A DNA stretch of 50,666 bases from Bigelowiella natans CCMP2755 (Eukaryota; Protista; Cercozoa): positions 1 to 50,666 of the forward strand of contig ADNK01002760.1 in assembly GCA_000320545.1 (NCBI GenBank), in the 5' to 3' direction. Each line of letters starts with the position of its first letter. Positions within the stretch are counted from its first letter, which is position 1. A program made the position numbers and the translations under genes. The notes below the pieces were generated by a model. It saw only the letters and a list, made by a program, of their open reading frames with translations, was not told the origin of the DNA and made no database searches. Positions 1,590 to 46,180 of the stretch are shown in pieces.

Positions 1590-2470
1590 GGAGGTGCGTG
1601 ACACCCGGACACTGAAACCAAACAGAGCTGCAGTTAAACAGCAGCTCCGCAGACGTTGTGCGAACATCACGATGCACTCGCGTTGTCGATTCTCATGTGA
1701 AACCAAGCGTGTAAACCATCCCAAGCGCGTTTGGCGGAGAGAGTCTCGATGGCGAGTCGGTTCGCATAGTTGTTGTTCACTTAGATGCAGGCATCATAGG
1801 AGCATTGCTATGATGTAGAAATATGCATCAATGTGAAATCAAGCACACATAAGCAATGCGATGTACATGCCCGTAAGATCTTTGCATGCAATCAATCGTG
1901 CAATGGTGAAGTGCCTGCAAGCTCTACACCTCATTGCACGGCACATGTAAATCTGCAGCGCTGACGCACATGGTGTCACGCACATGCACGGCAATCATTG
2001 TGAACATGATCGTCGACGACGCGCATGCACGCGCGGTGCACGTCTAGACGTGAAAGGATGATAATTCGAATGTATTTTGGCGGACGCTGCATGCGTGCCT
2101 GCGTGTGGCGCGATTCAGTGGCAGTTGTTGCCATGTTGGTGTCATTCGTGATCATGGGCTTGCGGCACAAGCTGACAATGACCACGATCGAATCTTGCGC
2201 CGATGCATGGCTTTCATCATTCTGAGTCAGAAATGATGAAATTGCTGTCATCGATCAGGCCAAGGCATGCGATGCATGGTCGCAACAATGACGACCGCAT
2301 AGCATCCATCGCTACGGTGTGCATTTCATTACGCATCCTACGCACACGTGTGTGTGCAGCATGCACAGGATTCGATCGTCGCACATGTTGCATGGTGTGA
2401 CGTCACCACTATCTACACGCGAAATTGTGTGCTCCTACACAAGGCGCGTCGTCCGTGCACAGCAATACGA
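1590..2470. other. TpA-depleted, TpG/CpA-rich intergenic tract (partial)
   Basis: No TA between about 2075 and 2298; dense TGCA/CATG/CACG words. Confidence 0.7.
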
Positions 2471-2639
2471 CGCAATGCGCAATTTTTATTTCTCTATAGC
2501 TATCGTTGTCGAATTTGACCACGTTCACAGGCTCAGTGATAAATGATCTCAAGACAAATAACAATGCTAGCAGCCCATGCACACAAACTTGCGTACGTAT
2601 GTGTAAGTTAATTTGATTGACGTTTTAAAGTAATTGCTC

Positions 2640-5600
2640 AAGGGAAATTGGTGACAGCTCTCCCTCAAGCATGTAGCAGTATAAATGCACCACACCAAAA
2701 GATGTTATTATTCACTGGGTGTTCTAGGGCGAAGACTAATAATAATGCTCTTCAACTCAAGATTGCTACAGGAACGTGATGGACAAAAACCTTAGATGCC
2801 AGCAGGGAAATATCCTGCGACATGGACGCATTGTCCACAAACTCCATAATATAGACGACATCGAGTCTTTTTATATTTTCAATAATGTACACAGGATTCC
2901 TCTTCCGCCTTCAAATAATCGTGCAGTTGAGTTTGCAGATTTGGCATTCCCCGGACATGTCAGATGAATGCGTGCCTGCCCGTACCATGCGAATAGTCTA
3001 GTCCAACGATCATCAACAGAAAAAAAATTAGCGGAACTGTGTGCTAATTTACCACTTATAAGGCTCCTCACCCCCCCCCTCCCCCCATTCTCTCTACATA
3101 CAAACACCGTTTAACGTTATAAAAGCCTACCGAGATATCCTCCCTTTCTACTTCGGTGTGGTGTGTAACATCAGTGGCATCTGCAGTTCCTATTTCTCCA
3201 GGATCGCATTCTAACTTTTCATCCTTATCCGTGCATTTGGATGATGCTATTCCTTGCATATGGCGGGAGTCGCTGTCGTGGGCAGCCATAACTTGATCAT
3301 TGCCGGTAACAGGTTTTGTAGGCTCAACAGTCTGGGGCTCCGTGCTATCCTTCCCTTCAGACATTTGCTACAATCGAAAACAAATGGGCAAGACAAAAAC
3401 ACAAGTTTAATATGAGAACTGAAAAGCTATATATATATTTGTTTCTTCAGCCAAAACTAAACGCTGTAAATATGTGGGAGATGTGTGCTAATGACAATCT
3501 ACATCTCAAAACTCCTCGTTTTTGACATCCTAGTTCCCACTCATATTTCCTTATGAACCGCAAGAGTTCTTTTGAAAATCCAGATTTGAAATGAAACCCA
3601 ATTCAACTACCGTAGGCTGGTGCTGCGTGGGTTTCGGGACGACGCCCACAAGCTCGTTTTTATTGGAATATGAAGGATTGTTCTCTACCTCCGATGAAGT
3701 AGATATTATCGAATTATCACGCGGTGTGTTGAGATTCTCATACGATGTCTGAAGATCGAACAAGGTTTCACGTTAGCTTGTTTTCGCGCAGCGCATTGAA
3801 GGGTTATGAAGTATATACTTTCTCATCGTAATAGAAAAAGGAGTCACTTGAAACGCAGGAGAGGGAGGAAGAATGGCGACACTCATCACGACATCTTCCG
3901 TTCTAGGAAATTCACACTTCGGCATATTGCACTAACGGTATAGTTGGTAAACAGCTACTAACCTTGTGCTTCTGCATTAGGAGCTGCATCTTCGACATGC
4001 GCCTATGAAGCTTTTTATGCAATCGCGAAGATGCTGGGGGTACAGCCGATGACGAAGATGATGACATGTTCCGTTGTTTCAACTGAGCAAGGATAGAGGA
4101 AATTATAGAACAAATCTGACGAGTGAACAAGCTATTTGATACAGCACTTATGCTTTGTTCAACCTTGTGAAATTTCTTGGTTAAACGCCTGAAGCTTCGC
4201 CTCCCCCTTAGAAAGAGTCGAACGAGTGGAAGGGAGCAACAGTTTCAGGAGTGATTGCGTGCTCCTTGTACATTAACGGAAAAGCATTTAGACTCATTTT
4301 AAGTCCTCTTTCTCCGAAGACTTATCGAAAATGGCCTGAATTATCTTGTGATTTAAGGTTAAAATATTGTCTTAGGGTTTTTTTTTCCAGTGCGAATGTC
4401 CTCACTTGGCAGAGAGCAATATCTCAAGCAATGTCCGCCAGGTTGTGGCGTTTGGGAGAGAAGACGTATGTTCGGACGGTTGACGTTTAGTAGTTTCCGG
4501 GGCGTTTTCTGGTGTACTTTCGTAGATCTATTCGTTTAATTCATAAACATGCTCGTGGTTAGCGCGTTGGCGGATTCTCTTGGGATGAATTCAGGTAGAA
4601 ACACTTCCGTTTTCTCTTGGTTGGAATTGTTTTCATTGTTGTTGTTCTCATGAGTGCCGGGACTAGTAGGAGCTGGGCTATACTCCCGACATCTCCCACA
4701 GTGTTCGAATCTGATCCAGACCTACGAACACGAGAGTGATGAATCTCGACGATCAAAACTCATCCGATTCTAGGATTTCCCTTCGAATGACTGAGATTTC
4801 TCCTCGAAATAGAAGGATAATGGAAAACATCCAAAACAATCGGTTGACAGAGTGTGTCTGACGGCATGACGTATTTTTCAGGCGGAGGGACATGGATCAC
4901 ATCGAGAATGGGTGTGAATCACATTCTGCGACATAAATATATGGTTGTCTCTGTAAGATATTTATGGTTTGCGCTCTTACTCGTTTACTTTTTACACAAC
5001 TGCTGAGGTAGCTCACGGGTATGGCTCTCGCTTTGCACATGCGGGGAGGGGAGGCAGTAGTGTGGCATTTTTTCCCTATCCTAATCATCATTCCCCTCCA
5101 TGTCCCTGGATCTATCACGCTGTATCAAATGCGGGGTAAAAATAGCATTATCTTTTCACTTAGCAGGTCGTCTAAATCGACGGATGCGGCATCGATATGC
5201 CGTTGGAGACGATACATGGGGTAGCACCACTGGAAAATCGTCTTCCAAAGGCGCACAGGCAACATCCCGACGGGCCGTTGGGGTATGGCCTCGCATTCCC
5301 AAGTTGTGCTCTTAGCTGAGACTAATATCACCTACTTTTGTTCGATTTGCCTCTTCCTGTCCTCTTCTATGCCAGATTGTGCTATCTGTACTCGCAGTCC
5401 TCTTCCTACTCAAAATTATAGCCAGCTCCATCTTAAATCCTCTGCGAAGCTTTTTAGAGACAGTGGAGGTGATTTGTTTTGGAAAGGATTTGTTATGTAC
5501 ACGTGTGTAGATCAAGCCCTCTCTTACGTTAGTATTGTAAGAGTTTGTGTGTGCGCTTTCCCTTCTTCTCCACTTCTGTCCACCAACTATCGGGACCCCC

Positions 5601-6838
5601 CCCACCACCCTCTACCCTCCTTTCTTTAATTATCTGCAAACTTGCTTTTACGAGATCACATTTTGAGCAGTTTTGTTCACTTGCTTCGGTCGGTTGCACT
5701 TACGAAATCTTTTTCACATGTCTCTGCCTGCTTTACGTTCTCTACACTGCAGATCATGCTAACAACATGTGTGTTTCTGTGCGTGTTTTCCTTCTTTGTG
5801 CTTTTATTTTTTTCGTGGACGGATGCTTGCCACTGTCCATCGTCGGTTATGATCTCAGATACGAGCCGATAGTCCGAAGCATATGCTGTAATAAAAAAGA
5901 ATTCTCACCAATAACATGTCTAATTGCCCTGCTCATCATGCACCAGTCGCACGAATTCTAGCATCGAACACTATTCTTCCAATTAGGTATTTTTATTTGG
6001 CCTCACAGCTTATGTTCATCCCCACTCCTCTGCCGTTTATAATAACGTTTTACGTTCTGGCCGCTGGGTAAAGAGCGTAGTAGTACACACTACCAAACAA
6101 AAGACTACAATGACAATCCTGATATGAACGCCACCAAAGACGACTGGGCATAAGTCCATTGGATAAATTTCATTTATTTTTTTTTCCATTCATGATTGAA
6201 TCCATTCGTATGCCCGTACTTATATGTATATTCCTAACTTAGATACTTCTTCAAAGCACGAGGGTTTCTTCTGCTATTCCTATCCTTCATAACAGGTGGC
6301 AAACAGTTACGTGTAGCTGGACAGTCATCAGTATGCTGCTCATTTTGATCCAGAATGCCATTGCTTAATCACCAACTCTCCGTCGTCTCTCACTGCTATT
6401 CGAGAAAAGAAAATACGAGGGATAGATCATCTATTCCTAGTGTTGTCCCCCCCCCCCCCGTCACGAGGCGTATTTCGGATTTCACAGATTCATTTGAAGA
6501 CGTTTCATTTGTTCGTTCAATTTGCAGGCATTCCGTTGAGTTTCAAAGCTGGCCGGGTCCTTAAGCATTTGGGATTTAATGTTCGCCGACACTTCAAGTC
6601 ACGGTACGAACAACTGCACATATTGCGTAAGCAGTATCTCTTCAACAACACGTACCATCAATGGCTACTCGGTTTATTTCTCTACTATATTTGTATATCC
6701 CTTAATACCCCCCCCCCCCCCCCCTCTTTTCCACTCATCTTCGCCTCCCATTTTTTATTATCTCCTTCCTCCTCATTTTGTCGCTATCTGACCCGATTGC
6801 CAACATCCTGGCATACCTTATCATTTGGCAGTGTGCTG

Positions 6839-6888
<50 letters not shown>

Positions 6889-8440
6889 TATATATATAAT
6901 ATTCATGTAATATATAAAATACTATCAAGGGGTCTTCGCGGTGGCCTAGAGTACTTTGATTCGCTCCGAAACGTGTTAGCCGAAAAGCCCATTCGAATGT
7001 AAGTTGTACCATGCCATGATGATAGAAATATGTGGTTATTATAAGCCAATTGTTTATTTACTACACAAATAGAAAGAGGAAGAAGCATTGAATGTATGAT
7101 GATATCTTAGATCAAATAAGTAGCAAACTCGTATGCATTCGTTAAAAACAAAACTCATTTTTGCCCTTCCTTTCTTCTATCCATAAACAATACCAGGTGC
7201 TTCATGCTGATGTGGGCGCCATTGCCGACTCAACTCCTGCCGTTTCTCGTTGGGTTTCTCACGGGTAATATAATCACCAATTAGTTTAAGATTACATTCT
7301 AGATCTAAGATTCCTTGGATAGCCAGAGTGTTGATCGTGAGTAATTTAGTCGGTAATTCAAGTGGTATGAGAATACTTGGAGATTTTATGAAACTTCTTC
7401 TTTTCGGCCTTGAGCTGTCATCACCTTGTTGCCTCTACTGTTTGTTTGGTTGTTGCTGGTGGTGTATCTACTGGAAATCGTCGTCGTCTTTAGATATAGG
7501 AACGAAAGAGTTTATACTGGGGGCTGTTCCTTCCAAGTTGATACACTTCTCATGCCCGCTTATCATTGGCTTAGAAGCGTCGTCTCTCTCCTCAGTAATG
7601 CCCATGCGGGGGAATGGGATAGAGGAGAGGAGAAGGGGGAGGGAAGTGGTCGCCATCTTCTTATTTTTTCCATGCTCCTAGTATGGCACTTGACGTTGCC
7701 GTTGCTGTTTATAAAACAAACACTGTCTTTGGTATTCTGGTAGGCCCTCGCTGGAGAATCCACAAGCTGGTTGTCTCTTATCGTCGTGATCCTTCCAGTG
7801 GCACTGTAAGTCCGTTGTTATCGTAGTAGCGGAGTGCATGGTTTAGCGACGAGATCGATCCCTTCCCCTCTCTAGCCTTGCGAATTCGCCAAGCATCATC
7901 CTTATTGTCATCATTATCATCACCATCACCATTAGCATCGTCATCATCGTTATCACTACTACCAGGTCAATCATACTTCTGGCAGCAATGGCGTACTATG
8001 TCAAAGGCGCACTCGTGAAAATGAAGAACGGAGTCACAGTAATGTTATATGAAGATGTATTGTAAGATATCGCTCACTGATGATGATGATAGCAGTACGT
8101 GCAATAATCTCCTTCCTTATATGGCATTATCTCGCTCCGGGAGAAAATACGAGAGAAGAGGAAGAAAACAAGGAGCAAGGAGAGGAATGATATATTGAAG
8201 AGAAATGTTCATGATGATGACAACAAATTCTGTATTAATTCGAAAATGGAAAGTTCTTTCAGATCGTAAGATTTCACGTGATCTTTTTCAGGACGACGTC
8301 CAATATGCTGAAAAGCTCATCGTGTAGTGAGGGAAAACTTATACAGGCCATTTGCGTTATTCCATCAACAATATGAACTTCAGTGGTTAGAGTAGATGGA
8401 ATTAAGAACGAACGCACTGCTGCACATGAGATCTTCTGAG
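2640..8440 (-). CDS. multi-exon hypothetical protein (possibly more than one gene); ends approximate
   Basis: Series of minus-strand exon-like ORF segments flanked by AG/GT, e.g. CAAVRSFLIPSTLTTEVHIVDGITQMACISFPSLHDELFSILDVVLKKIT, WECEAIPQRPVGMLPVRLWKTIFQWCYPMYRLQRHIDAASVDLDDLL and RKRNPVYIIENIKRLDVVYIMEFVDNASMSQDISLLASK. No domain recognised. Confidence 0.45.
6846..6898. repeat. (TA)n microsatellite in a probable intron
   Basis: Directly visible. Confidence 0.95.
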
Positions 8441-9560
8441 CACAAAATATTCCGAGCTGTAACATAGAGTAATTTTGTCCATAAAATAGAATTTTCTGTT
8501 TTCCCCACATGTGACATCAATTGTTAATCATTGTCATGAATCTGATCATCATCAGCATCATTCTCCCGTGCACACGTTCTGCCATGCTAGCATGGTTGGT
8601 GAAGTGTGAGAAATGGCACACATCAACGCATGTGTTGTCGCGTGACCGCCATCAGCGATGCGATTAGCGATCCACTGTCAGTGGCATGGAACTTGCTGAA
8701 CAGCCAACGTGTGCTGGTGTGTGCGAATTCAATGTGGGAGCTTGCAGACGGCGTGTCAGCATGCTGGTGTGCCCACATGCTCGTTGAGGCATTTTCCTGT
8801 TCTCATTGCGCCACACGGTTGTTGCCACCGACAGGGTGAGCATTTCCAGATTTGGTGAGACTGCATGAAACGAAGAACACACCAAACGCACTCAGCACAA
8901 TCAAGCTGCCGCCTTGCTAGCTTGGCTAGTTGGCGAAAAGTGCCGGCCAGCTGCACGCATGTCTGCATCACGAAACAGAAACAATCGAGCTGAGGAATTG
9001 ATTGTTGAGCCAAGACATTCTGTCCCACGTTTCTGACTTTTCCAGCGAGCATGCGTCTGTGTCATGCGTGCGGAAACGCTTCCGCAATGTCCACACACGC
9101 ATGCCCAAGAAGTGTTTGCTTCACACGGCAACGAAAAAACGTCGTGGGTCACGTGGAGAACACACGAGAATCGCATTGCTGTGTGCACTCAACTTGTTCA
9201 GCACCCAAGTGACTCTTGCAGCTTGTTGCGAGAAAGAAGACAGAAATGAGAGTTTCCATTGGAACATTGAACGTCAAACATTGAAAATTGAACTGCGCAT
9301 TGTTGCAAAATGACCCACGTGCGCAATGAGCACTGCTGAAACGGACTCAGCTAGTCAGTGCCAACGAAAAATTTCTGAAGCAGGCATCGGGTGTGTCATT
9401 GAGGCATGATGAGGCAAAGCGACAAACCCAATTTGATGATCGTGTCCAAAAAAGGAGACGGAGACATTCAGTGAAAAAACAATTCCAAAAAACACATCAG
9501 TTTTCGGCCTTGTGGTTGGGAGCAAGCAAGATTCTGCGGGATGTGAAGGATGTCAGGAGA

Positions 9561-9608
9561 GAGCGGGGATCTGGAAAGTGGGTAGAGCAGGGATCTAGAA
9601 AGTGGGTA
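9561..9608 (+). repeat. two-copy 24-bp tandem repeat
   Basis: gagcggggatctggaaagtgggta / gagcagggatctagaaagtgggta. Confidence 0.9.
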
Positions 9609-9803
9609 GATCTAGAAGAACATTGAACATTGATGAACATTGAACATGTCATGGATCGATGGTGGGTAGATTTGTCCAGTAGTTTTCTCCAGGGGGGGTA
9701 GTTTTGTCTCCAACTCGCCTGTCAGGAGATGGGCACAGCTCGAGATGGAGAAACACCGAAAAACGCCACGGATGATGTCCCTTGCGACAACGACCTCACT
9801 GCG

Positions 9804-9823
9804 ATTCTGGAATTCTCTCGAAC
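9804..9823. promoter_or_regulatory. putative heat-shock element upstream of the sHSP gene
   Basis: TTC-tg-GAA-tt-CTC-tc-GAA, i.e. alternating nGAAn pentamers with one mismatch, about 270 bp before the HSP20 ATG. Confidence 0.55.
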
Positions 9824-10087
9824 TGCTGTCCTCAATTTCCAAAACACAGGAGGTTTGATTGATGCGACACCCGGGATTCGAAGTCTTTGAATGAAAATCA
9901 ACAGGACATTCACTCCCAAAACAACCGAGATGTGTCTCAAGATGTGTCTGGAAATGCTCCAGAAGAAGGCCGGAAGGCATCCCGAAAGTCCCGAGCAGAA
10001 GACAGTGCACAGCTCCTCCATTCTTCCATCACCATCGTCAAAACTCAAAACCCCAAACGAACAACTAACAGCAACTTGACGAGAACG

Positions 10088-10813
10088 ATGTTCCACAACT
10101 ATCATTACCCTGCAGCAGCAGCTATGTCCCTTCTGCGGCCAGGATTTAGACGACCGTTCTACCACGCCTTTCCTGACCTTCGCGATTTCTACAGTGCCGC
10201 TGACTTCGAGGAAGCTTTCGAGTCGATGTCTCGTGACATGAGGAGACTGAGACTTCAGCACGAACAGTTCCTGGCCAGGTCTCCAATGACCGGATCCCCA
10301 AGAAAGAAACAGAAGATAGAAATCCCAATAACCAACGAATCGGCATCGACATCTGAGGCTAAAAGCGTGACTGATGCTAACAAGGAGGGGGAAGGAAAAA
10401 TGGCAGCTGACACAACGGCAAACAAATCAGTCTCCAGAAAAGAAGGATTTAAAGACATATTCTCCAATGAATTCTCAGGTGATTGGTTTGTCGGACTGCC
10501 CTCATCCTCCTCTCTGCTACAAAGAAATGAGGAAGCCGACCGATACGTCTACACACTGGACAAAGCTATTGGAGACATCAAGTGCTCGGTGAGGGATAAC
10601 ACCCTTCACATCGAAGGGACAAAGGAGGAAAATTACGATAACGGTTACTACAAAGAGAGTTTCACTCGCTCTTTCTCCCTCCCTGCGAACATACAGACTG
10701 ACAAGGCGAAGGCAGAACTTGTTGACGGCAGACTGAGCATAAATATCCCAAAGTCCAGTCCTTCCAAGATGGAGAAGGAAGATGCTACCAGCAAGCAAGA
10801 TGCTCAAAACTAG
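10088..10813 (+). CDS. HSP20: small heat-shock protein (HSP20/alpha-crystallin family), intronless
   Basis: C-terminal alpha-crystallin domain: DIKCSVRDNTLHIEGTKEE...SFTRSFSLPANIQTDKAKAELVDGRLSINIPK. The first in-frame ATG is at 10088 (alternative 10124). Confidence 0.92.
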   Translation: MFHNYHYPAAAAMSLLRPGFRRPFYHAFPDLRDFYSAADFEEAFESMSRDMRRLRLQHEQFLARSPMTGSPRKKQKIEIPITNESASTSEAKSVTDANKEGEGKMAADTTANKSVSRKEGFKDIFSNEFSGDWFVGLPSSSSLLQRNEEADRYVYTLDKAIGDIKCSVRDNTLHIEGTKEENYDNGYYKESFTRSFSLPANIQTDKAKAELVDGRLSINIPKSSPSKMEKEDATSKQDAQN

Positions 10814-11099
10814 AGCCATGATGTAGCATGATAGGACAATTATAGACATGTAATATCATGACATGTATGCAACATGTATAGAAATGTGTATACATCATCT
10901 ATGCAAAATTCATGTCTAGTACTCATGTACTTTGAAGATAACAAATAGTATGGGCCATTTGCCCAATTAGACATTTTCACATTACGTAAATGATTCACAT
11001 TAAGCCACATGCTATGTCATGCATTGTGAGCTACGCATTGCCGAATTCTAAAGAGCGATGATGATGAAATTTGCATTTTTATCTTGTGCGTACGTAGTG

Positions 11100-11143
11100 C
11101 GCTTGCTGTGCTAGCACAGCGCACTGTGCATGATGGCGTAAGT

Positions 11144-11187
<44 letters not shown>

Positions 11188-11515
11188 GCGCTAGAGCGTG
11201 CGGAAATCATGCCACAAGTTTAACGAATGCATGCTGTGAACAGACATTTCCTAGATTTGCATGTTGATGCCAAGCTAGAGACTAGTAGATTGCAGTGTGT
11301 GTGTGTGTGCATCTCTAGAGCTTGTTCTGTATTTGATTGGTGTAGCTTGCACAATTCAAATGAAGCAATGGTGTTGATCGAATTTCGGCGTCGATGATAA
11401 AAAAGAGGAAACGCAGCACTTCATTGATTGGGTTGTCTAGTTGTGCGGCAGCCGAACACAATCTGTGAGCAAACAGCTGTCACATGCCAATCTTCTAGCT
11501 CACGGTGGCAACGGG
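11100..11515. other. partially TpA-depleted tract containing a (CA)n repeat at 11145-11186
   Basis: Most surviving TA are in CTAG/GTAG. Confidence 0.65.
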
Positions 11516-11518
11516 AAA

Positions 11519-13277
11519 TTAAATTTCCTCAATGATGGGTAAATATCCTTTCTGCCTCCTTGAGTCACTCACATTACTTGTAAATCCTGAATTTGTCATT
11601 AGAAACCGGTTGATTGACAATGAAGATAGCAAAGTTGACAAGGAGGGTGATACTGAATGGCAATTCACTACTATTCCATTGTCGCAGACTCTCACGGGAA
11701 AGAAGAAGAAGAAGAATAAGAAGAAGAAGAAGAGGAAGAAGGAAAATGGAATCAACAACATGGCGTGTTGTCGCATTGATCAGACATCAAAGGCGTCTTC
11801 AGCATTGTAACCGATTATTTTTTAGTCATAGTTATCTTTCTTCTTAGAACTGAATTTCCCCAGAATCCCCCCCACCCAATCCGCAAACATCCAACGCTAC
11901 TATTTCAGCCTCTCACCATCCTCTGTGGAATCGTGGAGAGCGATCGTTATCGGGGCGTCATCAAAGAGGAAGAAACGCCTAACGCAGCGGGATTTACGGA
12001 AGCACCACACCTGGTAATAATTAACATAGTTTATGATGCAACTGTTGTTGATGATGATGATAGGAGGAGCCCAGAACGACAAATAAAGAGAGCAGATCTG
12101 ACTTCTAATCATGCAGAGGGGAAAATGATGTATTTGCATTTTGGTGCTGCTATGGCGTACCCCTCCCCCCCCCCCCCCCCCCCCCTGTTCGATTCTCTTT
12201 GTAAACATCAGCAAACGTAAACCGAGATAGATAGAAAAATCCCACGCAACTCACCGCTCCTGTTGTGAGAAGTACTGCACATGCCACTACTACCATAATA
12301 ATCGTAGCCTGGAAATGGATGGAGATGATAGCATGGCATTGTTAGGAAGAAGAAGAAGAAGAGGCTAAGAGGGCGGCTGATGCTTCATTTCATTACAAAT
12401 TCAGATGTGGATATTACTGGTCTATATTTCACTTGCATTTCCCCAATTATATACGTTACAGTACCACTTGCAGTGATTCCTCTGCTTTTCTAGTCTCTTC
12501 ATCACTGGGTGCCCCCTGCTTACAGCCAGGACGCACACACACGCACACACACGCGCAAATACGTCATAGTTGTCATGGGCTTAAGTTCATATTTCAGGAT
12601 ATCAGAACTGCACACGTGAGATCTGCTTTCGAAGTGTCGCGGGGTATTAGCGAGAAATAAATACCGCTATTTAGATATTGGTAATAAAGTTATCTACTCT
12701 AAATGCAGCAACGACCTTGCCCCTTAGTTGACCACAGGTGAGATCAATCGCATTTTTGAGGCAGACGTAGGCACATGTGGTGTCATCCTCTTTGCATCTA
12801 AAGGATATAGATGTGCAACAACACCCCGAGTTATCACCATCAAGATCCGACTTCGTCGTTCGTAAAGACCGGAAATATATGGATAATTTCCTACAATGTC
12901 AAATCTTTAAATCATATATACCCTTCCTGGCATCTCGAGGTGATATCCTACATTAATAATCGGTCGTGCAACAAGAATTAGTATGGCGTTGCTTCAATAT
13001 CATTTCATCAAACTATCTATCAAATCAGAGTGCACACGAAGTGGAAGAAGGGGGGCAGGGACAAGTGCACTGGCCTAGTAGAATTGGTCTATATGAATAC
13101 TATTGACGGCGACTTACCGATACGCATTTCGGGTCGTATTTCGATTGACTGTTCGGTATCCTCCCCGTGCAAGAAGCTTCTAAGCATTCTCCGCGCGACA
13201 TATTCTTCGATCCGCGGAGGGGAATAAGGAAGAGTAATGGATAAGGAGAAGGAGTTACAGAATAATTATGATGATGG

Positions 13278-13312
<35 letters not shown>

Positions 13313-15598
13313 GCAATGGCGATGTTGGTGAGACAGCAGTAATGCGAATATAGAAAGCCTTGACGAAGGATCATAAAATGCAATTTACAGAACAGAGTCA
13401 CAGTAACTGTCTACTCGCAGTATTGCTGCAGGGAATGCGTGTATGGGTATGTTGATGCATATTACACACACAGACACACACACACGCACGCACACAAAGA
13501 CACAAAGACACAAAAATACGTAGCCCCCCCCTCCACACACAACTCCGTATAGCGAAGTAAACAGCCGCAGCATCAGAAGCAGTAGCAGCAGATTGTCCTC
13601 TCTACCTCCACCCCCCGACCCCCCCCCTCCTCTTCTCCTTCTCCTTCCATCCACCTTATGAGTCACCGCAAACACGCAGTCCGGCACAGCGGAACAGTCA
13701 TAGTACACGTCGTCGCTCCGACTGGTCAATATCAGATTATTACGAATGTAACAAACTTAGAGGAGAGGGTAGGAGAGAGAGGGAGGAGAGGTCAAGGAGA
13801 TCAGGTGCTACCTTGCACCCTTCTTATTGCCTTTTATGGTTATCACTTATTTTATCATTTGTAGGACTGCCATGCTCATAATATGCGCTAGCACCAAATG
13901 GAGAATAGGTTTGAGTTTTCACTGCTGACACTGGAAGCACAGCAGCCTTTTCTTGACTACATGCTGCCTACCTCCTGCAGATGCCGAGGCTATCACACTG
14001 AGCGGGTGGGTCTTTCCAATTATAGGAGGAGTTTGAGGAGCAGTACTTTTCTCCAAACCTTTAAACACAAGGCCCACCGTCATTACCATCATTGCAATTC
14101 GAGGGTGAAAGGGAGAAAAGGAAGATAGGAGAAATTGCAGTGAGAGAACGATATCTCGACTGCTACCGCAACCATCCGCTCTGGTCATCATCACTCTCAT
14201 CATCACCATCATCATCACAATCGTCGCCGTCGTCATCATCGTTTTAAAAAAAGATCACATCATCATCTTACTCGTGCAGGCAGTAGAAGTACTGTTCCAC
14301 GTGATGCGAGTCATCGATAACATGGCCGTCGCATTGCTTCCAGGCGTCCTCGTAGCAAGGGTCCTGGTGGAAAAACGCAATAATAGACGGCTTTAATACA
14401 TCCAGGAGATTTGGTAAAGGGGAGGACATTTAGGCATATATAGCCGCGCAGCATCACTCTTCCTTTCCTTTTTTCAAATGCTTGCAAGACCGCACACACG
14501 CTACAAACGAGAGGAGCTTGCGTCAAGATCGCCCAGGGAAACAGCTGGTGCTGCTACCAGTGCTTATGTAAAGGCACTATCCCATTCATTCCGACTCGAG
14601 CTACCTTGAAATCAAAGCCCTCCGGTGGAAATCGGTTGATGCATTGGTTAAACAGGCAGGAGCAGTTCGCTCCTGAGTCATCGTGAATCTGGCCTGTTAT
14701 CTAATCAAAACAGCAGCAGCAGCAGCAGCAGCAAGAACAGCAAAAAAGGGGTCAGGAGAACCGAGAGCGTGAGCAGGGACAGTGGCGCAACACAAAAGAA
14801 AAAGAGAGTGGAACGAGGAAGAAATTAAAAATTTATATACAACGCAGGGTTGGGGAAAGCCGAGGAAAGAAAACGCCATCAAACCAGCATCATCATCATC
14901 GTCATCATCATCATCATCATCGTATGATTCAGTAGCCTGGTATCGAAGATATCATTCATCCATTGCATTATCACTCATCCTAGATGCTTTTATGTGATAC
15001 TTTTGCCTTTATTTGTACGGGTCTGGGTGCGATTAATATGAGTATAGAAGAAGAACTCACCGAAGCAACACATTGAGTTCTCCCTGTGCAGTCGTAGACT
15101 GAATTGTCCTCCCTGGCATAAGGAAAGAAATCGAGCTCAATAACGACAAAGCCAGGAAGGGGGAGCATGCATAAATGTAATCTGATTTTCATAAAATAGT
15201 AAGATATGGGGAAACTAATCGCCAGGCCCGAGCACAGGTCACAGCTTTACATCGGTGATAACAGAGAGCAAAGACTTTCTTTCGTTCTGTCTTCTCAACC
15301 CTCTTTGCCAACAAGCTCGATGTATCTACAGCACGTGCGAATTGTGTTGTTGGCTTACAGAAACATGCACTTTTCATTTTCACAGTAGGTGCACGGGTTC
15401 TTCTCCCCCACGTGGCTCCTCCCAGGAACATCAGGAGTGCGCGTTGGTTGGGGGGTTGGGTAGAGCGTATCTCCTCGTAGGCAGAGGCCCTGAGTGTTAG
15501 TGCCGATTCATATGAACAACCAATAGGAAATAACGGATGGCTCTTAATGAGACCATATCAGCGATACTCGAGCACGCCGAAAGCAATGTATCAACAGG

Positions 15599-18021: not shown

Positions 18022-18370
18022 GAGGGCATTCATTTTCTTAGCACTAAAAACAAATGCATTTCAAAGGTGCGACATCAAAACTTAGCGGGTTCATTGTGAG
18101 AAAAGCCAAAAATATTCGACAAATAACCGACAGTTCATGGGCATTCTTTGGGTGTGAAAGCTTGTCGTTTTCGATGAAAGTCCTTGTTCACCGTCATCTC
18201 TCATGAATTTTGAGTTCGGCAGAATCCATTCTCTTTCTCCACACCAAAAGAAAGCCCGAACGTGCTAGCGTGTTTGCCTTTTGTGACAATGATCAACTCC
18301 GGGGTGGGGGCACTCATTTTGTAGGCACTGAAACAGATGCATTTCAAAAGTGCGATGTCAAAACTTAGCG
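18022..18370 (+). repeat. diverged direct repeat of about 65 bp (18022-18087 and 18306-18370)
   Basis: gggcattcattttcttagcactaaaaacaaatgcatttcaaaggtgcgacatcaaaacttagcg vs gggcactcattttgtaggcactgaaacagatgcatttcaaaagtgcgatgtcaaaacttagcg. Confidence 0.9.
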
Positions 18371-19255
18371 TCTAGGAAACCTAGCAGCTAGCTAGCTAGC
18401 TAGCTAGCTAGCCCTCGTGTTTGTTTGGGATTTTTGCACCTGCCGCTGCAGGTCGGCTTGAAAAATGCATCGCTTCCTGTAGCTGGCACAGCTAGGTTCA
18501 CATTCCCCGATCAACGTGTGTGGCATGCCAGAATGAAAGAGTCGCGTTTGTTCTGCGCTGCTTCTGTGACAATGACATCCCCAGAACGAATGATGAACAT
18601 GCAATGTCATGCGAACGAAGGATGCAAAACGAGCCAACAGTGATGAAGCACACCGCACTCGCGCGCGTGTTGTGTTCCAATCATGTTTGCTTAATGTGCT
18701 CGCTGCAAGCTCGCCACCATTGTCGCCTGTGGATGAGTTCGCAAGATTGCATGAAAAATTGCATGTGCCAGTCTAGCAGTTGCTAGCGCGCACGTTTGCC
18801 AGTCAAGCAGTCTGGCCATCTGGTGCACACTCTGGCACGCCTAGACTGCTAGATCGACTGCTAGACTGATACATGCTGCATGCTGGCATGGGCGTCTCTA
18901 CTGCACAACTGTGCGCCATGCTAGTAGCATGCTAGCATGTGGTTGGAACTGTTGCACGCAGCACGTGTGCATGTCTCTAGCTAGCTAGATGTAGCCCGAG
19001 TCATGCAATCTAGCAATGTGCACATCGCTAGATCGCCTTGCTAGCTTGGTAGCTAGACTAGCAGACAATGAAATTTGAGATTGTCGTCTTGCTTGCGTGT
19101 TTTGAGACGAAGCTAGCGAAGGTTGCAGTCTAGCAGTCTTGAGACAAGTTGTGTGTTGTTCGCTCTAATGTTCTAACTCAATTTTGATGCACAATTGCTA
19201 GCATGCTAGCATGGCCTAGAAAGCTGCAATGTTTTGCACTGACATGCGCCTGGAT
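18126..19255. other. strongly TpA-depleted intergenic tract with a (CTAG)n repeat at about 18387-18412
   Basis: Nearly all TA are in TAG/CTA context; two exceptions seen, near 18691 and 18870. Confidence 0.9.
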
Positions 19256-19638
19256 CATACACGCGCATTGCCACATTCGGACTTCAGCTCACTGCTCAGT
19301 CTTCAAGGCGAAGAATGAGCAGATCGCAACAAGCAATGAGGGAATGAAATTCACCAATCATCCTCGTATGATCCAACTAAAGTTTTTAATTCATTTCACT
19401 TTAACGTACACATGAAGTAACAAAACCGTACATTCATGTACCTACCTATTTGCACTCCAATTAAATGTACTCTAATCTCAGTAAAGCAACATATTCATAG
19501 TATTGTAATATATACTTTACGTCTAATCTGCATGAGATCGTTATTTTTGACGACTCCTACAACAATCTAATCTTGCCATTTATTCTATAATACTTTTCAT
19601 TAGTTTTCTTTAACTTGCATGTTGAGACAATATTCACA

Positions 19639-35236: not shown

Positions 35237-35314
35237 ATGTATGATGTCCGAAGAACTGTTGTAAGACATGCAATGTCAATGGGGTTTTATTGTTTTAGCA
35301 CAAACAGCATAGAT

Positions 35315-36340
35315 TGTCACACACACCGCCACTTTGACTTCACATGCGCCATGTGCCGCATGCATTTTGCGTTTCTCCCCGTCGCACAGCTGATCATGTT
35401 GAAGTAGTTGTTGATCTCCGCAAGAGCATCGTTGCACTCTAGCACTCTAGCACTGTTTGGTGACCAGCAACAAAAAAGCGTTGGCATGCTAGCATGCGCG
35501 GTCATGCATGCTAGCATGGTCGAAGCAACAATCGCTACCACCATGCATGACCTGTCCAACACCACCACCATCAGTGTCTGCAGCCATGATGACATCTGAA
35601 ATTAGCTAGTTAGCTAGTCAGCTCCGTGGAGAACATGAACTCGAGTCAACTTCACATGCATGATTTGAGCACATCCACGACCTAGCTAGCTAGCTAGCTA
35701 GACGTGCACGCACAACACTGGATTGATGTGATGTGACATCGCCAGATCGGCGGAGACGACAGCGATTTGGCGATCCTTGCTCTGACATCAGTCATGCTAG
35801 CATGGCACTGTTCAATGCGAGCAGACATGAACTCAGAAGTGCTAGATGATGGATTGACGATGCAGTCACCACGTGGCACGCACAAGCACCACATTGATCG
35901 ATCGAACAGTGCTAGAGTGTTGACCGACCTTTCTGCAATGAGCACAATGCTGGAATGAACAATGAACAATGAACAATGAATGAAGCATCGATGCAAAACC
36001 ACATGCGCCAGAAACACATGGGAGACAAGTGTGTGCATGAAGCAGCGCCTCAGCAAAAGTCATTGCGAGGTGGGACTCACACAGACTTGTCAGCACCCTG
36101 TTGGTGGTGAGTGACAACTTGCAACCGAGCCGAACCAGCCGACAATGAACAATGAACAATGATGACGAACTACGTTTCCAAAATGTTGCAAGACATTTGC
36201 AGTGTGCGAAATGCAGTGCCTCGAACTGGCTTCAGTGAGGACTGTGACTAGCAAATCAACTAGCTGATGCAATCCGCACGGACGGTAGAAACATGCAGAA
36301 TGCACACATTCTTGTCCTACGACAACAACAATTGTGCGTC
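35315..36340. other. strongly TpA-depleted intergenic tract with (CTAG)n at 35682-35701 and (AATGAAC)n units
   Basis: Every TA seen is in TAG or CTA context. Confidence 0.92.
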
Positions 36341-37997: not shown

Positions 37998-38498
37998 AGC
38001 ACTTGATGCATAGGAGGAGATGGAAGAAAGGAGAGGGACTAATAGCCAACACGGGAAAATCTGAAAGTTTTATTTTAAAAGAACTGTTTGGCAGCAGTAG
38101 GAGTAGTAGTAGTAGTAGTAGTAATTGTATATATTTGGTTGCGTTTTGCTGGATTTTCTGTTCGTCGTCAACCAAGGTTTGAGCAAGAAGGGAGACGAAT
38201 GGTGCGGCGGTTTTGCGCCAACCATGCTCGAAAGTACACAGGAGATGACTTGGGGCTTGTAAGGTATTTTGTAGTCATCGGCATCAGCACTGTCATGGCC
38301 TGCATTTTCGGATCAACATCGTTTTACGAGGGCACAACTGCATGTTAGTCTGTAAACGGCGGTGATACGATGTAGGGATTTGGACGCCATGCTGATATTT
38401 GAGGATGGGGAGGAATTTCTAAAGGAGGTGAGCCGTTGAACTATCGCTTTAGCTTTGATATTATGGCAGTTTGCAACGGTCATTCTAAGGCCTCTAAT

Positions 38499-38534
<36 letters not shown>

Positions 38535-39534: not shown

Positions 39535-39589
<55 letters not shown>

Positions 39590-40512: not shown

Positions 40513-41304
40513 TACGAATCGTATTTGCGGGCTTTTCACTGTTGATGACAGTCTGGTACAGATTGTGCGTTAAGAGACTTCAGTATGTCGAGATATCTCT
40601 AGATCTAGAAATGGCTAGGTGTGTGCACGCTTTGGAGCTCGTTGTTAACAATAAAATAACAGCTAGACAGCCCCACAAACGTCTAAATGTTTTGCGCGCT
40701 AAATCTAGATATCTACCTAGGCTACGTTACTATTGTGTCGATCGCGTGTAATACACCATTGAATCGACGTTCAATCCCACACAAATGCAATTAAAAACTA
40801 CTACTTCGCAAGCGTAGATTTACAAAGCGTTGTGTGTTAGTTGCGAGCTAACAAGAGCAAGCAGGTTATTTTAAAAAAATATCTAGATATTTTGCTTTTT
40901 CTGCATGTTTGCTTTCACTATCCAGCCTAGTATGCATATTTGTCTTTCCATTTGCGTAAGGCCGTCACTACGTGTTGCAAATGTCAATTGATGACGGTGA
41001 TCTCGGATGTATTTGTTATGCATGCGCAAAAACGATACGCTGCACATATATGCAACTTTTATAAGTATAAAGAGGCGTGTTTTAGAATAATAACGTAGTA
41101 ACAACAGCATCTATTGTCCAAATCAGTTAGTGCATTTGCCGCTGCTGGTTAAATATTTTTATCATCGTCATCATCATTATCGAGGATAACTTTTTCAGAT
41201 ATAGCTTAGACTTAGCTTAGACTGTGTAGCCTTCAACGCCAAACCAATGTAAGCATTGCCGTTAATAGCATCTAAATGTTATCAAATATCTTTAGAAAAT
41301 ACAC

Positions 41305-41343
<39 letters not shown>

Positions 41344-41424
41344 ACGATTATAAATGCACAGCTTTTGTTAGTCACTTGCAAAACTCTTCCGTAAATTACC
41401 TTGCTTCCTGCTTATAGCTCTCAA

Positions 41425-43652
41425 TTATCGGCTGTCGTGACGAATGTAAGCAAGAGAGAGACCCCCGAGCATTGCAAAGAACCCCTGAACAGAAGTTGGT
41501 TCATTCGTTAATAAAAGATCGACGATCCGGAAACACACCACCAATTAATGACAGCTTATGCATCAAACAACAGAATACTGAGCACTGAAAGTGCAAGACC
41601 CATCACGATTTAATCATGGGCGTTTGCATCACCCATCCACCGGCACTCTTTCTTTTTCGGTCGGTTTACCATAAGAGCCGCCAGCACGAGGACATTGAGC
41701 CAGATGCTGTTGGTGAAGCCCGACTCCATCCCGTAGAACTCCAGGATCGTCTCCCCGTTAAATATCCGGACATCGTTGAACTTGTCGTTGTCAAACTGGT
41801 TGATCATGAGCGCTGTCCACGGGTAGCGCAGAAAGCAGAGCCACGAGAACCACTCCCACCCGGCGGGGATCTTCTCGAAGACGATGAAGAAGCCTCCAAA
41901 GAACATGCAGATCGTGACGTAAGTCGGGAGCAGCGCGTTCGCGGCTTCAAGCGTGGGCACCGCTGACGCGACCAAGTAGGCCAGGACGATGCCAGTCATC
42001 GCCGTGAGGTAGTAGACGAAGATGAACACACCGAAGCTGCCCTGCAAATCGAGACCCCAGAAGATCGTAATCGTGAAGACAAGCGAGGTGAACGTGGCGA
42101 TCACGGCCTCCTCCAGGAACTTGGCCACGAAGTACGTGCTGGTCGTGTAGAGCCCGTCGGACCGTTCTCGGTAGAAAAGAGGCCGATCGAGCGTGAGGGA
42201 GGGGGTGAACGATGCCGCGCCGTAGCCCAGGATCGCAACGACGAAGTACAGCATTGCCGCTGTGCTCTGCATGTCTTGGATGTCCGTTTTGCTCCCCAGC
42301 CCGAAGTACAGGGATAGGATCAAAAGAGAGAAGAGAACCTTATCTCCGAGCCGGGGGCCGACGAACTCCCCGGACGTGTAGTGCGTGGTGGTGCGGTATT
42401 TTAAGATGGTGAGGATGCCGTGCAGCATCGAGTTGACGACTACAGGCTCCCTGGCGTTGAATGTAGGGCCTTTCGCCTTGAGCGTCTTGACTAATTCCGA
42501 GACGCGCTTGCTGTTGTCCTTCGACAGCTGGGAGCTGCTGTATGCTCCGTGGAAGTCGAAGTGCGCGGATTTGCCAGCCTGTGTTTGCATGATTGTGAAA
42601 GACCGAGCTCAGGTATAACTTGCAAGTGCTTCCTCTACAACATTTCTACTACTACTGCTGCTACTGCTACTGCTACTGCAACTACTACAATTAGCCAAAA
42701 CAACGATGTCTTCCTCAACCACACCTCGGCTCCTTCGATTAGCTTATTGTCCTCAGCGACTGACGCAACACCTTTGAGTGGACGAGGAGGAAGGTGAAGT
42801 CATTCACTAGGCCTATGAAAGCTCAGAAGCGCTTTTCATTCAAACAAAATACAGTTCCTTTTGAACCCCCCCCCCCCCCCCCCCCCTTCCTTAAACGTCT
42901 ACCACTAACACCGTGATGATTTGAGTCTTACTCAGATTCTTTGAAGGAACCGTGACTGAATCTAATGCCTTAGAGTTATCTTTATCGTCTTCTTTATCTT
43001 TTCCTTTTATAATAATATATTTTTTTCAGTAATTCAGTGATTGCGGTGACTATTTCTAAGTAGCAGCAGCAGCAGCACCACCACCACCACCACCATAGAT
43101 ACTAGGTAAAGACGCCATCAAGTTGGATGACTTGTGATGCCGCTGCTGTTGCTGTTATTGCAATACAAATGCAGCTTTCTCCTCCTAGAAATGCAAGGGA
43201 AAGAGGGTGATGGAATACCTTCTAACTGTCGGCCGCTGATTAGCTCAACCATCCACTCTACGGTCTGTGAAGAACACAAGGCAGCAAAGGCAGCAGCAGG
43301 AGAAGGAGGAGGAGGAGGAAGAAGAGGAGAAATTGCCGTTTTGGAAAAAGAAGCATACAATACATCCCTCGTTCGTATTAATATGTTGGGGAGGCAATTC
43401 TAGCTGCTCTTTTGCGTATTCAGCATAGTTTTGACGAAAACTTCGGATGAGTCCATTATTATTCTTTCATTTGCGCAGTTGATCTTTTCCCCCGTGACGA
43501 CTCACTAACAACTAGTAGTACTACCACCTACTGGTTCTAGCTACTATTGTCCCTGCAATACCGAGTCCTCTGGCTTGGGAGAGAACCCATGCTTTCCAAA
43601 ATACCCAACCTGGGAAGCAACACCAACAATTAACATATAAATCCTTGAATAC

Positions 43653-43687
<35 letters not shown>

Positions 43688-44928
43688 TATTTATATATCC
43701 ACCGAGATTGGGAGGGCTACTAGCTCATATTGCTTCCACACTACATTTTCCTTCACCACAGGTAGATTATCAACACTACTCGATAACACAACCTTGGGGG
43801 GTGAGGCTGTTTAGACAAGTACAGATAGCAATTGGAACTTGGTGACAGCTCTTCTCGTTTTACGATAACCCCTCCCCCCGCCCCGGCCCCCATTCATGTA
43901 AGCTACTACTACCATTGTCATGCTTGAAACACCGAGGGGCCCATCGTAAATCGTCTTGCCGCTGGAGAGCAGAAACAGATCTTCAAACTGCTGGAACGCA
44001 AATGCCGTAGGGGAATGAATGGTCGCGACAACGGTGCGCCCTATGCATCATCATTATAAATATCAAGGGATCGATTGGATACCACGATCAGGCTAAGAAA
44101 AAAGTCGTTACAGAACTTTGGGTATTAGAAGCAGTAGCTTTTGACATAACTACTACTAATAATAATAATAATAACAATGATAATAATACTAATAATAAGA
44201 ATGGTTCTACGATTAGGTACTCCCGCCTAACCTTCCTTAGCAAGAGCTTTCATTAGCACCACCACTTCGTTTGCCATGTGCGAATCGAGTCCAGTAGTAG
44301 GCTCGTCCAGGAATATCTACCAAGAATGAAGGAGAACTGAATACCACCGGCTGATTGATGAGGAAAGAATGCTCTTTATTGACGGAGGTTACGTACGATT
44401 CTAGGGGATGTCAGTAAGGCCATTGCGATGTTGGTGCGTTTCGCCTGGCCTGAATAATTTTTTGTTCAATGGTGATCATAACAATCATATTCGGCAAGTA
44501 ATATTGTTATTAATAACGCATATCAAACTGATAGTATTCGCTCATACCCCCAGAGATGCCTCGAGACAGCTCCGACCCAATCACGGTATCCTTGCAGCTC
44601 TGTTACACAGTGAAGGCAAACGCATACTTTTCAAAACTGGAGGTAAAGATATGATCTTTCGCGAGGGCTACTACCTCAAGAGAGAGCTTGTGTATAACAT
44701 CGTCCACACGCGCTTCGATTTCCTCTGCGGCCGTACCTGCAGGAAGCTTAAGAGTCCCAGTGTACATTAGAAACTGCTTCACGGTAAGATCGGGCACCTG
44801 TCGCATCAATGAGTGACAAGGACATAGAGGATTACGAAACCGGAAATTTACTGGCAACTCCATCATCATATCTCCATCGTCATCATCGGGCTCATCTTCA
44901 TCATCCGTATTTCCTTCACTGCTGCTAA

Positions 44929-44966
<38 letters not shown>

Positions 44967-45076
44967 TTACTACTACTACACTACTGCTGCTACTACTTTA
45001 CCAGAGTGTCGAATTGCTCCACGTACGAAGTCAGCTTGTTATACCTTTTCATTAGTGATTATACAAATATCATACA

Positions 45077-45118
<42 letters not shown>

Positions 45119-45765
45119 TGGTTCAAAAAGTTCGTGTTAAAAATTCGGAACTTACACAACAGGTCCAGCTCTCTGTCCGTCATAGAGAATCTGGCCGTCG
45201 ATTTGGCCTTTGAATACAATCACCATAAATATCTTGAAATTACACCTGTTGAACCTCTAAAGTGGTAAGCTCTTACCAGTGTTCTTGCGGCCTGCAAGAA
45301 TGTCGAGCAACGTTGTTTTGCCACTTCCAGAAGGACCTTCAATACCGAATCTGTTAAAGCAGCCTTCACTTCTTCGCTATTCTACTACCCATGAGTGCTG
45401 TCAGCCTTCCAGGCAAAAAAGCGCCATTCAAATCATCCAGAATTTTTAGTTCCTCTGTCCGAAAAGTCACTTTCAAAAATGTGACAGAAGCTTGCAAAAA
45501 CCGATTTACCATTATCATTTGCCTTGTTCTTCACAGTGTACACCAAATTCTGGAAAGTCACGTGCATTCCCTGACAAATCACAAGTAGCAATTTCAGCGA
45601 AGTGCGCAAATTTGAATGCTCGCATCCATTCATTCGCATGCACGTGCGTTAGACATTGCTTCTCACTAGTTGCGTCGTGCATTTGTGCGCGTGAGGCGAT
45701 TGACAGACCGTTTTTGAATCTGATGAATAGTTGGATGAACGGCCCCCTACGCCCTTCATCTCCAT
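41425..45765 (-). CDS. ABCG/White-family ABC half-transporter, multi-exon; start approximate
   Basis: Walker [24 protein letters not shown]-loop SYVEQFD, signature RGISG, Walker [14 protein letters not shown]-loop TIHSP, and an ABC2 membrane domain ([14 protein letters not shown]...[29 protein letters not shown]) ending YIRHDSR*. Confidence 0.93.
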
Positions 45766-45881
45766 CGACCCTGGGCTTTTCACCTCGTCTTTGGTGTTTC
45801 AGCGCATCAGAACTAATTCGCTACATGACAGACGACTCCCTGAGCGGAGCCTCGCCAGTGAAAGTCAAAGCCTACTCGTAC

Positions 45882-46180
45882 CTTTTGCCGCTGCCACAGC
45901 TGCGGAAGCCATCTGTCAGTTTGATCGGGTTCAGATTCTCTTCCTTTGAGGCGTTGTCGCACTTGCGCAATCCGACGTGTTGACGGCCAAAAAGGCAGTC
46001 GCTCTGGGATGAACCCCATGCATTCCAGTGAGACGGCGTGTTTTTTGAAGCGAGGTGGCTTCTCGGCCCGTTTGGCAACGTTCGTTGTTCTTCTTCCTTT
46101 CCAAAATGCCGAACTTCGGCAGGATGGCTAGATGGGTCCAAGCATCGTGGGTTCCCGGCGGACCCATGTCATGTTGCGCG
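45882..46180. other. TpA-depleted tract at the retrotransposon insertion flank
   Basis: Only one TA (in CTAG, about 46128) in about 300 bp. Confidence 0.75.

Follow-up and report, generated by a model that had tools for sequence, protein, structure and literature searches.

TA-erased spacer tracts in a Bigelowiella natans contig: a very probable long-term footprint of TpA-directed hypermutation

The subject of this study is a set of short tracts that have lost most of their TA (TpA) dinucleotides in a stretch of nuclear DNA from Bigelowiella natans CCMP2755 (contig ADNK01002760.1, positions 1 to 50,666; this whole 50,666-base stretch is called the window). The closest described system comes from the same species. 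A bioRxiv preprint (Mettrop et al. 2026; 10.64898/2026.01.13.699255) used mutation accumulation to demonstrate hypermutation of TpA to TpG or CpA in B. natans. In that work, 231 of 302 nuclear single-nucleotide mutations fell in an integrated giant-virus region (scaffold_10:336000–521500) and a virophage region; 230 of these 231 changed A to G or T to C, at TpA in nearly every case, and the mutation rates there were about 1000-fold over background. Nine more TpA mutations lay outside both viral regions, some with no viral open reading frame (ORF) nearby. Exons, introns, and spacers of the viral region mutated alike (Table S1 of the preprint). Scanning with 1-kb windows, the same authors reported 124 TpA-poor clusters of at least 3 kb genome-wide, and found TpA-poor coding sequences to be enriched in transposable element domains. 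They read the process as a genome defense in which adenine would be deaminated, named an ADAT2 homologue as the candidate enzyme, and suggested recognition of foreign or repeated DNA, for example via small RNAs. The words CTAG, context, flanking, trinucleotide, and tetranucleotide do not appear in the main text of the preprint (Mettrop et al. 2026).

The tracts described here share with that system the species, the TpA target, the combination of low TpA with high CpA+TpG, and probably the TpG/CpA products. The preprint stresses viral or transposon origin and clusters of at least 3 kb, whereas the tracts in our window are 0.4–1.6-kb spacers between expressed host genes. We conclude that they are, in all probability, what TpA-directed hypermutation in B. 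natans leaves behind over the long term when close to saturation, transitions having gone on until only refractory sites remain. The phenomenon of a TpA mutator is already known, and priority for it belongs to the 2026 preprint.

Other known systems are less similar. Fungal repeat-induced point mutation (RIP) also produces localized, dinucleotide-specific transitions that degrade selected DNA, and is also thought to be a genome defense; however, it converts CpA to TpA and thereby enriches TA in duplicated DNA, whereas the tracts show the reverse (TA observed/expected 0.14–0.53, with CA and TG in excess). It also acts on duplicated sequence, while most of the tracts are single copy (18084–19377 is unique and 8488–10105 has only short partial matches elsewhere). 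Decay of CpG by deamination of 5-methylcytosine likewise removes one dinucleotide and yields TG and CA, but CG is undepleted in the tracts (0.72–1.32) and TA is lost instead. APOBEC3 and ADAR hypermutation in animals resembles the present case as deaminase-type editing of foreign nucleic acid with a neighbor preference, ADAR favoring a 5′ U; here, in contrast, the substrate is chromosomal DNA, there are no strand-coordinated clusters, and a 3′ G is disfavored.

The first-pass annotation of this DNA had already argued, from the letters of the window, that neither RIP nor CpG deamination fits, and the dinucleotide ratios agree (TA lost, CA/TG raised, CG kept). It had also proposed a context-specific A:T→G:C mutator at TpA, possibly a genome-defense system, for which it knew of no named pathway. 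A mutator of this kind has been measured directly by mutation accumulation in this species, and the preprint gives the same defense interpretation, so that the remark about a missing pathway is out of date (Mettrop et al. 2026).

Extent of the TA-depleted tracts and their surviving sites

Depletion was expressed as the ratio of observed to expected dinucleotide counts. The window as a whole has a G+C content of 45%, with ratios of 0.81 for TA and 0.84 for CG. Six spacers had been singled out in the first-pass annotation, and their TA observed/expected values were as follows.

1590–2470: 0.46, only half depleted
8527–10064: 0.12
11100–11515: 0.49, only half depleted; overlaps the transcribed last exon at 11227–11585
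18126–19255: 0.56
35315–36340: 0.36
45882–46180: 0.07

Observed/expected values for TG and CA in these six intervals were 1.1–2.0, and those for CG were 0.69–1.20 (window, 0.84). The description of the intervals as poor in TA, rich in TG and CA, and spared at CG was thus borne out, with TA at 0.07–0.56 and TA-free gaps beyond those of all shuffles. The window was also segmented by a rule under which any 200 bp could hold no more than two non-CTAG TAs. Five TA-erased tracts of 381–1,618 bp resulted, with TA at 0.14–0.53, TG and CA at 1.1–2.0, and CG at 0.72–1.32. In the list below, a half-site is a TA with C before it or G after it, and the ratios are observed/expected.

1949–2329: TA-erased tract, the core of interval 1590–2470; TA 0.23, TG 1.72, CA 1.81, CG 1.32
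8488–10105: the most complete TA-erased tract; TA 0.14; its 1,618 bp retain 9 TAs besides 6 in CTAG
18084–19377: CTAG-rich TA-erased tract; TA 0.53; CTAG accounts for 30 of 45 TAs
35297–36317: TA-erased tract; TA 0.36, TG 2.01; 16 CTAG and 7 other TAs, all 7 of them half-sites
45823–46215: TA-erased tract, the tract part being 45823–46165, with a retrotransposon from 46166; TA 0.26

The 276 bp of tract 45823–46165 that adjoin the retrotransposon junction had a TA ratio of 0.08. Together the five tracts covered 4,707 bp, or 9.3% of the window. Because this is far less than the total spacer DNA, the signature is not window-wide, as had been claimed.

The longest TA-free gaps in the window were 425, 367, 258, 253, 250, 231, 227, and 199 bp, and those of 425, 367, 253, and 231 bp all lay within tract 8488–10105. 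In 200 mononucleotide shuffles the longest TA-free gap was 104 bp on average and 171 bp at most. The GC content of the tracts was 0.49–0.56, compared with 0.41 for introns defined by RNA; this excess is about what is expected if one G or C is gained for each TA lost. The window contained 13 (TA)n arrays of at least four units (300 bp in total), none of them inside a tract. A search of the tracts for "ghost" (TA)n microsatellites, recognizable as in-phase CA/TG strings, gave 21 bp/kb compared with 12.7 ± 4.6 in simulations, which was too weak to be used. Both thresholds of the preprint (a Rho of at most 0.43 for TpA and of at least 1.52 for CpA+TpG) were passed by tracts 1949–2329, 8488–10105, and 35297–36317, and tracts 18084–19377 and 45823–46215 each narrowly failed one of them.

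The TAs remaining in the six intervals were not a random sample. Of 115, 62 were in CTAG, 36 were half-sites, and 17 were neither, whereas outside the intervals there were 112 CTAG, 1,029 half-sites, and 1,848 of neither kind. CTAG therefore made up 54% of TAs inside and 3.7% outside. The observation that TAG and CTA dominate among the survivors was correct, since 98 of the 115 were CTAG or half-sites.

Flanking bases and strands in de novo mutations

We asked which TpA sites mutate using the de novo mutations in Table S2 of the preprint. The integrated viral region was located in the assembly through the nucleocytoplasmic large DNA virus (NCLDV) capsid family, and 200 kb of the contig containing it (C3187) were analyzed. 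Positions on C3187 equal the scaffold_10 position minus 329,226, and reference bases agreed at 210 of 210 sites. Of these 210 A/T mutations, 206 were at TpA, a preference for a 5′ T neighbor like that of ADAR/ADAT-type adenine deamination. Taking the adenine of each strand as the target and the NTAN tetranucleotide as its context gave 12,338 targets, 206 of them mutated. Rates relative to the mean, sorted by the 3′ base, were as follows.

TAT: 1.58
TAA: 1.17
TAC: 0.86
TAG: 0.44

The odds ratio for TAG compared with TAH targets was 0.37 (Fisher p = 2.8e-6). Resolving the 5′ base as well gave the following contexts.

CTAG: 0 of 446 targets mutated, with 7.4 expected (Poisson P = 5.8e-4)
GTAG: 2 of 915 targets mutated, 0.13x
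CTAC: 0.52x
TTAG: 0.54x
CTAA: 0.61x
ATAG: 1.2x, unprotected
CTAT: 1.8x, unprotected
ATAT: 1.95x, the hottest context

The mutation rate drops as the flanks turn to G/C. Because CTAG had no mutations and GTAG only 0.13x, yet ATAG and CTAT mutated at 1.2x and 1.8x, a site is protected only when a 3′ G is combined with C or G on the 5′ side. The first-pass annotation had supposed that a flanking C or G blocks the mutator; this held for TAG taken as a whole (0.44x) and for CTAG (0/446), but a lone C or G does not block.

The same order was found among the survivors in the window tracts, where CTAG was followed by GTAG/CTAC, then TTAG/CTAA, and then the rest. Over ten site classes, with both strands summed, survival in the tracts and de novo rate were inversely correlated (Spearman −0.76, p = 0.011). 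Within the 200 kb of C3187, the segments 11549–15157 and 184698–190300 (3.6 and 5.6 kb) were near saturation, with TA observed/expected of 0.12–0.13; since the viral region around them is only partly depleted, erasure is uneven within the region.

Line labels in Table S2 allowed strand behavior to be examined. Among neighboring mutations of one line no more than 200 bp apart, the strand was shared in 5 pairs and differed in 12, so the strand-coordinated runs characteristic of APOBEC-like kataegis are absent from the B. natans de novo mutations. Strand runs tests gave no significant result for eight of the nine lines (P > 0.13), and the counts per strand were 91 and 119. This lack of coordination points to independent hits on either strand of the palindromic step and not to processive editing of a single strand. 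A positional strand switch was considered as a sign of a replication-linked mechanism; it showed a weak trend only (Mann-Whitney p = 0.03), with no coordination, and was not used.

Transcripts, repeats, and a retrotransposon around the tracts

One raw RNA sequencing run and three transcriptome assemblies were mapped on positions 7600–13500 (5,901 letters), which include the most complete tract. The following transcribed features were obtained.

7600–8572, + strand: 3′ part of gene A, expressed and spliced, with introns 7806–7965 and 8039–8291 (GT..AG) and an end at about 8557–8572; contigs and raw reads
8989–9708, − strand: weak unspliced transcript within the tract; contigs 8989–9159, 9143–9682, 9109–9384, 9362–9708, and 9019–9409, with raw reads on the minus strand
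9974–10969, + strand: intronless HSP20 small heat-shock gene, coding sequence 10088–10813 (Pfam HSP20, E = 5.5e-13)
11227–11585, − strand: last exon of a spliced gene with CT..AC joints; contigs from 11227 or 11250 to 11585, giving an end at about 11227–11250

Contigs for the HSP20 transcript start at 9974–9989, and a poly(A) tail follows 10969. Its depth reached about 10,000 in one transcriptome run, compared with about 140 for its neighbor gene A. The weak transcript at 8989–9708 was found in three transcriptome assemblies, at a depth of 2–27 compared with about 140 for gene A. The RNA also carried a pair of linked variants (10723 and 10731), neither of them at TpA.

Tract 8488–10105 fills the spacer between the poly(A) end of gene A and HSP20 together with about 80 nt of the gene A 3′ untranslated region (UTR), the HSP20 promoter, and most of the 5′ UTR of about 115 nt. 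Its left end is thus about 80 nt within the 3′ end of the upstream gene, its right end stops some 20 nt short of the start codon of HSP20, and its edges are within about 100 nt of mapped transcript ends. The TA observed/expected values across this region were as follows.

Erased spacer segments: 0.00–0.18
Last ~80 nt of gene A: 0.13
HSP20 promoter: 0.00
HSP20 5′ UTR: 0.17
HSP20 coding sequence: 0.55
HSP20 3′ UTR: 1.08
Eight introns defined by RNA: 0.84
Next spacer, 10970–11226: 0.68, mildly depleted only
Transcribed last exon, 11227–11585: 0.51

That tracts end near gene boundaries, as first proposed, holds for this spacer, the one tested with RNA. The accompanying claim that transcribed DNA is spared stood in part: introns (0.84) and the HSP20 3′ UTR (1.08) were spared, but the tract includes UTR ends and a weak transcript, the last exon at 11227–11585 is depleted to 0.51, and viral exons mutate too. 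"Intergenic erased, transcribed spared" is accordingly a fair first description of one spacer and approximate, and it is no rule. The adjacent introns had also been described as full of (TA)n, whereas those defined by RNA are simply TA-normal.

The tracts differ in their repeat content. Tract 18084–19377 has no second copy in the genome. Tract 8488–10105 is mostly single copy, with three partial, weak genomic matches, two of which are the upstream regions of HSP20 paralogues: about 340 bp upstream of the gene (9720–10060) are about 80% identical to C1597:105161–105517 and C1679:41034–41391. The HSP20 paralogue P0002 is 80% identical. Comparison of the tracts with one another gave no match. The right part of tract 35297–36317 is made of two short interspersed repeats, and a direct repeat lies at the left edge of tract 18084–19377.

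35954–36120: short interspersed repeat of ~160 bp, at least 325 candidate copies at 76–94% identity
36142–36266: short interspersed repeat of ~125 bp, young and of high copy number, at least 794 candidates, many 95–99% identical
18024–18087, + strand: 64-bp direct repeat, copy A, adjoining tract 18084–19377 on the outside; 84% identical to copy B
18308–18370: copy B of the 64-bp direct repeat, inside tract 18084–19377

The few TAs of the ~125-bp repeat are confined to CTAC or CTAG. Scans of the window with Rfam and for tRNAs gave no match, including to this repeat. Part of the erased DNA is old repeat material. Copies A and B of the direct repeat differ at CTAAAA compared with CT-GAAA (one gap) and at ACAT compared with ATGT. 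In this very small sample, the latter difference would be the CA-versus-TG pattern expected from an ancestral TA hit on different strands.

Tract 45823–46165 is cut by the insertion of a retrotransposon with long terminal repeats (LTRs).

46166–50666, − strand: young LTR retrotransposon, ~5.7 kb in full with 327-bp LTRs, cut off here by the end of the contig

Similarity to other copies of the element begins at 46164–46170. Its ORF of 1,356 amino acids contains RVT_1 and RNase H and a weak integrase zinc-binding domain, and its target duplications are 4 bp of the form NNCA. There are at least 785 candidate copies with ~100% identity. Among 13 flanks of seven other copies, 6 had a TA observed/expected of at most 0.40, a level found in 7.5% of background windows (P = 2e-4), so that the element tends to occur where TA is scarce. 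The end of Pol (46545–46925) had been thought to resemble an adenine methyltransferase, an idea that was not supported by a Pfam search at E ≤ 1 or by a PDB sequence search; the last 539 Pol residues (46548–48164, − strand) gave only weak matches to an integrase zinc-binding domain and to retroviral integrase.

Mechanism, alternatives, and significance

The observations are consistent with the following mechanism. In selected duplex stretches, either base of the TpA step would be changed by a transition, giving TA→TG, or TA→CA when the other strand is hit, and loss of TpA would continue until only refractory sites were left. The chemistry would most likely be the conversion of adenine to inosine at TpA by a deaminase, in line with the preprint's proposal. 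Such an enzyme would have to open the duplex locally or flip a base out, steps that G/C flanks may disfavor, a 3′ G most of all, and it would hit each strand independently, with no processive single-strand runs. In this window the process would be targeted to spacer DNA between host genes, made up in part of old short repeats, and the cue would probably be a local silent chromatin state; foreign origin as such is probably not the cue here. Boundaries near mRNA ends would then reflect the silent state together with selection against hits in coding sequence, and the same silent state would attract LTR integration.

Several observations weigh against this interpretation. One is that CTAG and GCTAGC are enriched in the tracts beyond retention, which erasure alone does not explain. 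CTAG occurs in the tracts at 11.5 per kb, 4.4x its density outside, and GCTAGC at 4.67 per kb compared with 0.13 outside (36x). These excesses require more than survival; their source is (CTAG)n arrays, such as that at ~18380–18412 inside tract 18084–19377, and a 12-bp palindrome.

8583–8594, and further copies starting at 18928, 19202, 35485, 35507, and 35793: palindrome CATGCTAGCATG, six copies in the window

Each of these six is inside a tract, two of them in tract 18084–19377, and the rest of the window has none. In the genome as a whole CATGCTAGCATG has 3,828 sites, compared with 7 for a reversed control and about 5 expected by chance; a composition-matched palindrome, TGCACTAGTGCA, has 134 sites, so that CATGCTAGCATG is about 29-fold above it. 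Part of the copies are arranged as arrays with a period of 8 bp. The sequence is absent from the 200 kb of contig C3187, and in the papers searched it was found only as incidental occurrences, in work unrelated to B. natans.

The LTR retrotransposon raises a second difficulty. It is un-erased, with a TA observed/expected of 1.15, and a copy within the hypermutable viral region (C3187:176729–181068) has 0 mismatches in 4,340 bp compared with the copy in the window. The unmutated copy may be immune, very recent, or the product of repeats collapsed by the assembler. Because assembly may collapse repeats, the absence of mismatches is no evidence of immunity, and mutations in this copy were probably uncallable in the preprint as well. 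Third, self-comparison of the DNA stretches examined gave no pair of TA-rich and TA-poor homologues beyond the 64-bp repeat, and since that is the only such pair, the direction TA→TG/CA in the window rests on the preprint. Fourth, the preprint links the process to viral and transposon DNA, and our main tract holds a host heat-shock promoter conserved with paralogues. Finally, the enzyme is only a candidate, and its disfavor of a 3′ G is opposite to the behavior of known ADAR enzymes, which prefer a 3′ G. A genome search for A_deamin (ADAR/ADAT1-type) found a single locus, C2414:14438–15741, which is not mentioned among the preprint candidates (ADAT2/ADAT3 homologues only).

The alternative that survives best accepts the mutator and differs on its targeting. 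It is possible, if doubtful, that the mutator recognizes foreign or repeated DNA itself, that the erased spacers are graveyards of old insertions, and that chromatin and transcription are irrelevant. Repeat relics in two tracts, the TA-poor flanks of the LTR element (6/13 at ≤0.40 compared with 7.5% of background windows, P = 2e-4), and the enrichment of transposable element domains in TpA-poor coding sequences (Mettrop et al. 2026) all speak for such recognition. However, the most abundant young repeat, the LTR element, is untouched at 1.15, the erased HSP20 promoter is host DNA common to paralogues, and one of the tracts is unique sequence.

A second alternative concerns the chemistry. The T of TpA might be modified, for example by oxidation to 5-hydroxymethyluracil, and then mispair with G or be repaired faultily, giving T→C, which appears as A→G on the opposite strand. 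Because TpA is palindromic, A→G and T→C are indistinguishable from sequence; the strand counts of 91 and 119, the lack of a deaminase tied to the process, and an ADAT2 candidate chosen by similarity alone leave room for this chemistry. A genome search with Pfam Tet_JBP was blank, which is weak evidence because control genomes were blank too. The preference for a 5′ T, in contrast, agrees with tRNA adenosine deaminases, whose target adjoins the conserved U33. On these grounds we consider thymine-directed chemistry unlikely.

We put forward, at similarly low probability, a stronger version of the chromatin idea that would bring in the palindrome and the LTR element. The tracts may constitute a distinct chromatin compartment of short silent intergenic islands that recruits both the mutator and LTR integration; CTAG would be exempt through a protective readout (a modification or a bound protein) and not through mere duplex stability, and CATGCTAGCATG would be a cis-element, serving as a nucleation, boundary, or protected site.

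Two explanations that dispense with the mutator are highly improbable. Selection could in principle lead spacer or promoter DNA to avoid TA (to keep out TATA-like sites, to fix DNA stiffness or nucleosome positions, or to withhold insertion sites from TA-targeting transposons), and one tract does include a working heat-shock promoter and CATGCTAGCATG is strongly enriched in tracts; but direct measurement has shown a mutator that leaves exactly this signature, the survival order of TA classes tracks its measured rates, depletion spans repeat relics as well as spacer that yields little RNA or none, and a neighboring spacer is un-erased. Nor are the tracts at all likely to be copies of a single repeat family of intrinsically TA-poor composition, which the first-pass annotation had named as grounds for refutation, or foreign DNA already low in TA on arrival: tract 35297–36317 does contain two short repeat families with hundreds of copies, and the one of 125 bp, although young, already has its TAs confined to CTAC or CTAG, but tract 18084–19377 is unique, 8488–10105 has just three partial weak matches, and no tract matches another.

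With the tracts taken as footprints of TpA-directed hypermutation, the findings bear on the biology of B. natans in several ways. Mutators that convert A:T into G:C at a single dinucleotide of selected DNA are rare among eukaryotes, and this one is RIP in reverse. What is new relative to the preprint is the tetranucleotide flank rule, backed by de novo mutations, which places a mechanistic constraint on any candidate enzyme; further new points are the placing of a tract relative to transcript ends, the absence of coordination between strands, the association with an LTR element, and the abundant palindrome. The last two, the un-erased LTR element and CATGCTAGCATG, provide two concrete handles on the system. 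Sub-kilobase spacers between active host genes are erased up to about 100 nt from the ends of mRNAs, and this suggests both a footprint of the mutator much wider than the 124 clusters of the preprint and a targeting that depends on the local state of chromatin or transcription and not only on foreign origin.

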